Positions 47,671 through 47,880 of a stretch of 64,000 nucleotides of DNA are shown in pieces. The translations under genes were made by a program, and so were the position numbers. The stretch lies in sequence record phage_1; one strand, given 5' to 3'. Within the stretch, counting starts at the first letter, position 1. Each line of letters opens with the position of its first letter. The notes beneath the pieces were generated by a model that worked only from the letters and a program-made list of their open reading frames with translations, searched no databases and was not told where the DNA came from.

Positions 47671-47880
47671 ATGTTTCACCGTCCCGGGTTTTCAGCTTTA
47701 AACACCGATGTCTGTTGGGCTGAGTACGAGCGGGTGAAGGAGTTCTTACCCGTAAATCCTAAACACATCAACGTGGGTACTATCGGGCGTGTTGCGTTCG
47801 ATGACACTCCGCTGAGTACGTGTATTAAAGCTGCGCTTGGTACGCTGCCGGCGTCTATAGTGTTTGAGGAATTAAAATGA
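47671..47880 (+). CDS. 69-aa mini-protein with EF-Tu G1/P-loop-like segment
   Basis: [26 protein letters not shown] versus EF-Tu [32 protein letters not shown] SD. Confidence 0.6.
   Translation: [69 protein letters not shown]

Follow-up and report, generated by a model that had tools for sequence, protein, structure and literature searches.

A putative EF-Tu-derived strand kept under purifying selection in a small protein of SPN3US-like jumbo phages

Why should a jumbo phage keep, in a protein of 69 amino acids, a stretch that reads like the N-terminus of bacterial elongation factor Tu (EF-Tu)? The question is raised by a small gene, here called the mini-gene and its product the mini-protein, in a 64-kb window (the whole stretch of 64,000 nucleotides from sequence record phage_1 that was analyzed). 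The window comes from an SPN3US-group jumbo phage (genus Seoulvirus), and the approximately 3 kb around the mini-gene shows 99.8% identity to Escherichia phage vB_EcoM_Lh1B and 97.9% identity to Salmonella phage SPN3US. The mini-gene corresponds to SPN3US_0192 (YP_009153486; SPN3US gp192), and its product is labeled a hypothetical protein in both SPN3US and Lh1B. EF-Tu is a hub of phage-host conflict, involving Lit, type IV Thoeris, Avs7, Q-beta replicase, and contact-dependent inhibition (CDI) toxins, and we know of no described phage factor that copies the N-terminal core strand of EF-Tu. The original prediction, made from the letters of the window, was that the mini-protein carries a degenerate EF-Tu P-loop segment unlikely to bind GTP and that it is either a mimic or decoy of EF-Tu or a piece of tuf that was captured and is now under new selection.

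The resemblance is easily seen. Residues 31 to 56 of the mini-protein align without a gap to residues 10 to 35 of Escherichia coli EF-Tu, with 12 of 26 identities and with FDD where EF-Tu has HGK, exactly as had first been read from the letters, and BLASTP against E. coli EF-Tu returns 14 identities in 35 positions (pairwise E value of 3e-5). None of 20,000 shuffled queries reached the ungapped score of 58 (mean, 26.3; standard deviation, 3.8; Gumbel p of about 1e-5), a significance against shuffled controls that applies to a single comparison, picked after the whole window had been read and not a fair test. On the scale of a database, the match of the mini-protein sequence alone is borderline. 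Against the PDB, phmmer gave an E value of 0.076 for an EF-Tu fragment chain and approximately 0.5 to 0.8 for full-length EF-Tu, and against the NCBIfam EF-Tu models the values were 0.016 to 0.033; all 26 of the PDB matches below an E value of 10 were to EF-Tu. The mini-protein alone found no match in Pfam.

The match becomes significant because profiles of homologues, rather than the single sequence, can be compared with EF-Tu. About 30 family clusters were recovered from 1.8 billion representative sequences and, by a word-indexed search, from 5.8 billion proteins; all of these clusters come from SPN3US-like, Machinavirus-like, and related Erwinia and Salmonella jumbo phages or from matching metagenome contigs. 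A profile built from 10 family sequences matched EF-Tu chains in the PDB with E values of 2e-8 to 1e-5, placing query residues 29 to 57 or 58 on EF-Tu residues 9 to 37 or 38. The top 59 distinct PDB sequences found by this profile were all EF-Tu, and the next class, eIF2-gamma, followed at an E value of 0.0045. When a 25-sequence family alignment was compared with full EF-Tu by hhalign, the probability was 96.1% (E value of 3.3e-9) over 26 columns, corresponding to EF-Tu residues 12 to 37, and no match was found beyond this core. In the profile search of the 5.8 billion proteins, EF-Tu fragments (E value of about 6e-6) rank after the family members and some misassembled open reading frames (ORFs) of SPFM phages. 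The long homologue P0022 matches the NCBIfam EF-Tu model at an E value of 9e-8 over model positions 3 to 38, and many distant relatives carry 13 consecutive residues identical to EF-Tu 11 to 23, followed by R-S/T in place of the K-T of EF-Tu. Distant members of the family are thus closer to EF-Tu than the window protein is. From the profile, hhalign, NCBIfam, and large-search results, we conclude that the similarity is very probably homology to EF-Tu specifically, confined to strand beta1, the P-loop, and helix A. Weak single-sequence matches to long repetitive proteins (P0014 and P0017 to P0020) involved only the N-terminal part of the mini-protein or low-complexity repeats and were judged spurious.

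The mini-protein matches two PHROGs without an assigned function, phrog_28329 (E value of 1.1e-52, covering residues 1 to 69 of 69) and phrog_12626 (E value of 4.2e-17). The full-length profile match and the 25-member alignment place it in the SPN3US gp192 family (phrog_28329/phrog_12626), and its gene has the position typical of the family in SPN3US-like and Machinavirus-like jumbo phages, 3' of a GNAT acetyltransferase gene. Conservation across the 25 members is uneven. Residues M1, C15, E18, Y19, R21, N34, V35, G36, I38, and G39 are invariant and F25, L26, H32, T37, V41, C51, L56, G57, T58, and P60 nearly so, with H32, T37, and V41 conserved in at least 90% of the sequences; the EF-Tu motif picked out by the original prediction is therefore one that the homologues share. 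It follows from this pattern that constraint falls on the N-terminal helix, the beta1 strand, and the helix after it but spares the second half of the P-loop.

Selection acts throughout the gene. For homologue pairs that are not saturated, the ratio of nonsynonymous to synonymous change (dN/dS, pairwise Nei-Gojobori) is 0.05 to 0.16 across the whole ORF and similar or lower in the EF-Tu-like part, and between lineages synonymous change is saturated while H.NVGTIG.V stays unchanged. The codons of the invariant residues vary by lineage (AAC or AAT for N; GTG, GTC, GTA, or GTT for V; GGT, GGC, GGA, or GGG for G; ACT, ACA, ACG, or ACC for T; and ATC or ATT for I) and show no special identity to those of E. 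coli tuf. Comparison with E. coli tuf at the DNA level likewise revealed no identity beyond that imposed by the shared amino acids, and hence no sign of recent capture or gene conversion. Because the codons vary freely, the capture would be old, and what is conserved would be the protein, not the DNA or RNA. We consider the mini-ORF to be, in all likelihood, a real gene under strong purifying selection. Of the two readings first proposed, a captured tuf fragment under new selection agrees well with the EF-Tu-specific profile match, the relatives that are closer to EF-Tu, and this purifying selection.

A natural deletion bears on the same gene. In the SPFM/SPLA Salmonella phages and in SaP7, the loss of approximately 0.5 kb (about 47842 to 48320 in window coordinates, with its junction at a shared "LG" microhomology) joins residues 1 to 57, in frame, to the final 26 codons of the next gene, giving protein P0003. 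Here the core of the mini-protein survives and the downstream gene is dispensable. The GenBank LR5359xx records of these phages (SPFM1, 7, 9, 12, and 20) match the region in about 39 small pieces and yield scrambled chimeric ORFs (P0008 to P0011) in which pieces of the mini-protein are shuffled; these look like assembly artifacts.

What has been kept is far from an elongation factor. The Walker A (G1) signature is GxxxxGK[ST], and the window protein has GRVAFDDT in its place. Nothing past EF-Tu residue 38 to 40 or so is present: the protein stops 12 residues beyond the helix, leaving out G2 to G5 and the remainder of the G domain, and no other EF-Tu region aligns to its 69 amino acids, so that domains II and III, which bind aminoacyl-tRNA, are absent as well. 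The best NCBIfam score is 14 bits, compared to a cutoff of 522 for the EF-Tu family (PF00009, TIGR00485). Because G2 to G5 and domains II and III are absent and the P-loop lysine has been lost, the mini-protein can be predicted with confidence to be neither a GTPase nor an elongation factor, in keeping with the earlier view that GTP binding is unlikely.

The decay of the loop can be followed within the family. Long-form homologues in Erwinia and Salmonella phages share 43 to 50% identity with the window protein in most cases (that of phage Huxley is unscored against the window) and occupy the same position after the GNAT gene, but they are 106 to 112 amino acids long, have an extra C-terminal domain, and have a better-kept P-loop, GHVDHGRS. 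Their C-terminal extension found no match to full EF-Tu by hhalign. The position of the P-loop lysine is occupied by Arg in 14 of 16 long-form relatives, by Lys in one, and by Gln in one. Where EF-Tu has D-H-G-K-T in the second half of the loop, the long forms have DH(G/S/Q/N/A)R(S/T), and the SPN3US clade has AFDDT, AFESK, GFADT, TFSGT, or GFSGS. A minimal P-loop phosphate binder would have a conserved loop rich in glycine along with a basic residue and Ser/Thr; these features were found together neither in the window protein nor family-wide, and are partly present in some relatives. Phosphate binding therefore seems implausible in the lineage of the window protein.

The same piece of EF-Tu recurs in at least four further families of small phage ORFs that are otherwise unrelated to this one. 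We scanned IMG/VR with patterns derived from the family and then with the exact back-translated 8-mer HVNVGTIG. The 8-mer occurs at 54 loci: 24 full-length tuf genes, 10 loci truncated by the end of a contig, and 20 short internal ORFs, some of these being frameshifted tuf genes. At 15 IMG/VR loci the motif lies in proteins that are not EF-Tu, and these are of five unrelated kinds, counting the SPN3US gp192 family. A marine family (36 clusters, some of them named "EF-Tu-like GTPase" by the Joint Genome Institute [JGI]) consists of proteins of 60 to 100 amino acids that start with M..K.K(P) and a 13-residue EF-Tu piece, followed by an unrelated conserved TGDYIDPTPWTPEDHERF domain. In T4-like Muldoonvirus phages (Muldoon, SP1, VP8, and PS2), the only part held in common is a C-terminal module of 32 residues that corresponds to EF-Tu residues 9 to 39. 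Shewanella phage 1/4 has one ORF with the motif, and a group of high-GC viral contigs has an EF-Tu-like start of 18 residues that then diverges, the match to EF-Tu stopping at residue 20. These four families resemble the gp192 family in having the same EF-Tu piece in proteins of 60 to 170 amino acids, whereas their flanks are unrelated and the motif may be N-terminal, internal, or C-terminal; they look like independent captures or products of module shuffling. The minimal common element is HVNVGTIG(H/R)(V/I), and its codons vary within and between the five groups. Two control motifs, chosen as equally conserved in EF-Tu, were never found in isolation: DCPGHADY (65 loci) and GPMPQTREH (25 loci) occur only in genuine tuf genes or truncated copies. 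Because of this difference, the N-terminal strand appears to be singled out for retention. An origin at an attP or integration site was considered for the temperate marine family and set aside, as it has no bearing on the jumbo and T4-like phages, which are lytic, and the codons of the motif vary.

The mini-gene is preceded by a conserved RNA element that occupies the space between it and the GNAT gene. In the outer stem, positions 47609 to 47618 pair with 47657 to 47666; that is, AGCACUCCUU pairs with GAGGAGUGCU, which contains the Shine-Dalgarno sequence, opposite an anti-Shine-Dalgarno CUCCU. Thirteen distinct variants from relatives fold alike (-27 to -31 kcal/mol). In an alignment of 12 of them, 87% of the cells are paired, compared to 37 to 54% in slid controls, and six pairs show compensatory change; only 0 to 6 of 500 shuffles attain the observed values. 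The element is unique within the window. With its terminator-like inner hairpin, the leader should terminate or attenuate upstream transcripts, and on read-through RNA it should keep the mini-gene untranslated unless the stem is opened or processed; cleavage by RNase III or an internal transcription start are possibilities for such a release. Gated expression of this kind would be more in line with a regulatory or specifically inhibitory role than with competition against EF-Tu in bulk.

We propose that SPN3US-like, Machinavirus, and related jumbo phages carry the mini-gene as a true accessory gene, small but translated. The central 26 to 36 residues of its product would derive from the N-terminus of bacterial EF-Tu (strand beta1, P-loop, and helix A; from residue 3 or 9 to about 38), captured long ago, joined behind a phage-specific N-terminal helix, and held since then by purifying selection. 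What selection maintains would be the EF-Tu beta1 sequence H-x-N-V-G-T-I-G-x-V together with the amphipathic helix that follows it. The EF-Tu-identical strand may then serve as a sequence-specific interaction module that pairs with a partner able to pack against or recognize that strand, and the mini-protein would act neither as an enzyme nor as a cleavage decoy. Such a partner might be EF-Tu itself while unfolded or nascent, a different G-domain-like protein, or an undescribed host or defense factor. Translation would be tightly controlled by the leader stem-loop, which is predicted to bury the ribosome-binding site. Our confidence is not the same for all of these steps. It is high for the origin of the segment, the coding status of the gene, and the loss of GTPase character; for the explanation as a whole it is only slightly better than even; and for the specific idea that the protein is a mimic of the EF-Tu strand, or an interaction module built on it, it falls a little short of even. 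More tentative still, and in our judgment rather unlikely, is the broader proposal that at least five unrelated phage lineages independently captured and kept the HVNVGTIG(H) strand as a portable module engaging EF-Tu folding or assembly or an unrecognized host factor or defense, with the gp192 family as its jumbo-phage representative under the translational control of a dedicated leader.

Several observations weigh against this proposal. Literature searches found no paper on a gp192-type protein or on any phage EF-Tu fragment, and no partner. AlphaFold2 (AF2), given the 25-sequence alignment, returned low-confidence models of the 69-residue form (predicted local distance difference test [pLDDT] score of 61; predicted template modeling [pTM] score of 0.29) and of a 112-residue long form (pLDDT of 58), with helices at residues 12 to 25 and 47 to 56 and the EF-Tu-like strand disordered; neither model defines a fold. 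A strand that needs a partner, whether another copy or another protein, would be expected to look disordered in a monomer model. Folded EF-Tu has this strand in its interior, and its N-terminal fragment no longer exchanges after folding, which makes binding to the mature protein unlikely. EF-Tu is an extremely abundant protein, whereas the buried ribosome-binding site suggests low or gated expression of the mini-protein, which argues against stoichiometric titration of EF-Tu. Finally, E. coli tufB lies directly 3' of tRNA genes that are used as phage attachment sites, and such sites could bias capture toward the 5' end of tuf, in which case all five families may stem from capture bias. Such a bias would account for the origin of the pieces, but it cannot explain their conservation and long-term sequence identity.

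Other readings of the locus have to be set beside this one. A resemblance by chance or convergence, with no common origin with EF-Tu, might be argued from the single sequence, which is not significant at database scale, but the profile matches in the PDB (2e-8) and among the 5.8 billion proteins (6e-6), their EF-Tu-specific ranking, and the 13 consecutive identities in relatives make it hardly credible, and together with the hhalign result it is effectively refuted. Scarcely more credible is the decoy half of the original prediction, in which the protein would be a decoy substrate or inhibitor of a known EF-Tu-targeting system. The Lit cleavage site (G59/I60) and T382, the residue phosphorylated by Doc, both lie outside the copied segment, which spans about residues 3 to 40 at most and ends near residue 38, and a decoy for either system is not supported. 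As beta1 is the buried central strand of folded EF-Tu, mimicry of the native EF-Tu surface is also unlikely. The caspase-like protease of type IV Thoeris cuts EF-Tu after R45 and R59 (bioRxiv 10.1101/2024.10.24.620036, which also mentions Lit as an EF-Tu protease), and Avs7 binds domains II and III (PMC13581612), so that these sites, too, are beyond the copied residues. Several defense systems are known to target EF-Tu or to use it as a cofactor (PMC13581612; bioRxiv 10.1101/2024.10.24.620036), but a decoy for Lit, type IV Thoeris, Doc, or Avs7 was rejected on these grounds. It is also improbable, if not to the same degree, that the long forms are minimal beta-(P-loop)-alpha proteins that bind phosphate or a nucleotide (GTP, GDP, or a signaling nucleotide). 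Designed beta-P-loop-alpha polypeptides do bind phospho-ligands, and near-intact Walker A sequences occur among the relatives (GHVDHGRS/T among long forms, GHIGHAKT for P0030, GRVNLGKS for Muldoon, and, in two of the marine proteins, GHIDHGKT); conservation is, however, lowest in the Walker A half, both within and across the families, the window sequence GRVAFDDT has two acidic residues, and in the high-GC family the EF-Tu match is over by residue 20.

Two alternatives remain. The mini-protein might work with the adjacent GNAT as a pseudo-substrate, regulator, or substrate, the change of the P-loop Lys to Arg or Asp making it a non-acetylatable mimic. The GNAT gene lies directly upstream in every lineage examined and carries the annotation "ribosomal-protein-alanine acetyltransferase" in Erwinia phages, RimI acetylates the EF-Tu N-terminus, and Lys24 has become Arg in the 14 long forms noted above. 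Against this, these phages are syntenic genome-wide, so that adjacency is not independent evidence; the terminator-like hairpin separates the two genes; the GNAT profile matches generic GNATs only, not RimI or GNAT toxins, with no NCBIfam match; and the other four motif families have no GNAT neighbor in the loci inspected. We regard this partnership as improbable. Less so, although still unlikely, is a generic exaptation in which the beta-loop-alpha piece is a mere structural or dimerization unit (for example, one that pairs strands in a homodimer), unrelated to EF-Tu or translation. The N-terminal helix (C15, E18, Y19, R21, and F25) is as conserved as the strand, suggesting one compact unit; the AF2 monomer leaves the strand unsatisfied, as expected if it pairs in an oligomer; and the P-loop half drifts freely. 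A generic strand would, however, tolerate conservative change, whereas H-x-N-V-G-T-I-G has been kept EF-Tu-identical in five unrelated contexts, and the control motifs of EF-Tu are never isolated. An interaction specific to the EF-Tu strand is the reading that we prefer.

The features of the locus are collected in Table 1. The local gene order is an SMC-like ATPase, several tiny ORFs, the GNAT acetyltransferase, the mini-gene, proteins of 172, 140, and 82 amino acids, a macro-domain protein, and a lytic transglycosylase. By alignment of homologues, the GNAT most likely starts at 47111 (MAEIVIL...) rather than at the GTG at 47084 of the ORF list, and its translation contains masked positions (X). 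A profile of nine GNAT sequences found only generic GNATs in the PDB (best E value of 3.5e-4), and the window GNAT found no match in NCBIfam; because of these results, nothing supports the RimI-like annotation given to the Erwinia phage genes or connects the GNAT with GNAT toxins. A GNAT toxin-antitoxin pair of the TacAT/AtaRT type was rejected, given that the GNAT is generic and that the small gene lies downstream of it, past the terminator-like hairpin. On the other side, the stop codon of the mini-gene and the start of the next gene share ATGA. The 172-residue protein encoded there is 62 to 65% identical in Machinavirus phages and has invariant GE.HT, LLCEELGP, and GD(S/A)HLRT blocks, which to our impression suggest a metal-dependent hydrolase; it found no meaningful match in Pfam, NCBIfam, or the PDB. 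Four genes downstream of the mini-gene, in all relatives, is the macro-domain protein (ADP-ribose binding or hydrolase; 49036 to 49536).

Table 1. Features of the mini-gene locus (window coordinates) and loci of the other families that carry the motif
Feature	Coordinates	Strand	Remarks
GNAT acetyltransferase	47111..47599	+	Weak Pfam Acetyltransf_1/7 matches; phrog_3810; adjoins mini-gene on its 5' side in every lineage examined
Conserved three-tier leader stem-loop	47609..47666	+	Between GNAT stop and mini-gene ATG; RNAfold -31.5 kcal/mol, z score -5.3
Inner hairpin and T-run, terminator-like	47625..47653	+	From terminator scan and folds; hairpin 47625-47647, then U-run in RNA
Shine-Dalgarno sequence GAGGAG	47657..47662	+	8 nt 5' of ATG; within 3' arm of outer leader stem
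Mini-protein gene	47671..47880	+	ATG at 47671, TGA at 47878-47880; 69 amino acids
Phage-specific N-terminal helix	47704..47745	+	Residues 12-25; conserved C15, E18, Y19, R21, F25; without EF-Tu counterpart
EF-Tu-homologous segment	47755..47841	+	Residues 29-57, aligned to EF-Tu about 9-37 (strand beta1, P-loop, helix A)
Invariant core	47764..47793	+	Residues 32-41; EF-Tu beta1 strand and first P-loop residues
Degenerate Walker A, GRVAFDDT	47785..47808	+	Residues 39-46; EF-Tu counterpart GHVDHGKT
172-residue protein gene (phrog_14325)	47877..48395	+	Start overlaps mini-gene stop; mostly deleted in SPFM/SPLA relatives
Loci of the four other motif families	L070 2971-3255; L071 2689-3114; L073 2782-3153; L148 5814-6155 (-); L138 535-741		

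The mini-protein can be set against better-known proteins. With bacterial EF-Tu itself (tuf; GTP_EFTU, PF00009) it shares residues 29 to 57, homologous to EF-Tu 9 to 37, with the core H.NVGTIG.V identical, but only some 30 of 394 residues have been kept, and a phage-specific N-terminus of 28 residues has been added. Full-length tuf genes on large viral contigs are also host translation-factor sequence in viral data sets, but they encode complete EF-Tu of approximately 390 to 440 amino acids, whereas the mini-protein is a fragment in a new context. Many very large IMG/VR "viral" contigs (200 to 530 kb; L031, L033, L055 to L057, L064 to L066, and others) carry such full-length genes; the contigs may belong to huge phages with an EF-Tu gene of their own or be cellular sequence that was misclassified. 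Designed beta-(P-loop)-alpha prototypes, too, are stand-alone units of a strand, a glycine-rich loop, and a helix, of approximately 30 to 50 residues; in the natural family, by contrast, conservation does not extend to the phosphate-binding half of the loop.

In public databases, homologues from Erwinia phages ChrisDB, Huxley, Parshik, and Machina are named "putative elongation factor Tu" in GenBank, others (among them those of Erwinia phage pEa_SNUABM_8 and Salmonella phage pSal-SNUABM-04) "putative translation elongation factor" or "putative GTPase," and the UniRef name of the phiEaH2 homologue is "Elongation factor Tu." The name elongation factor Tu is, by our comparison, an over-annotation; the long forms, too, seem to hold the N-terminal piece only. 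The resemblance to EF-Tu was thus already visible in database names, and the fragmentary nature of the segment, its selective preservation, and its recurrence in unrelated phages seem not to have been described before. Labels such as "putative elongation factor Tu" and "EF-Tu-like GTPase" on proteins of 60 to 110 residues are misleading, and a correction is due.

For the biology of these phages, the main implication is that a piece of a host protein 10 to 30 residues long, identical despite saturated synonymous divergence and shared by several phage proteins that are otherwise unrelated, points toward a specific, as yet unstudied interaction. Under the broader proposal of a portable module, the module would be a natural, sequence-specific "strand mimic" of the most abundant protein of the cell. 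If the interaction involves the biogenesis of EF-Tu or an unknown sensor, it would represent a new viral use of host-protein fragments and would provide a compact and testable peptide motif.

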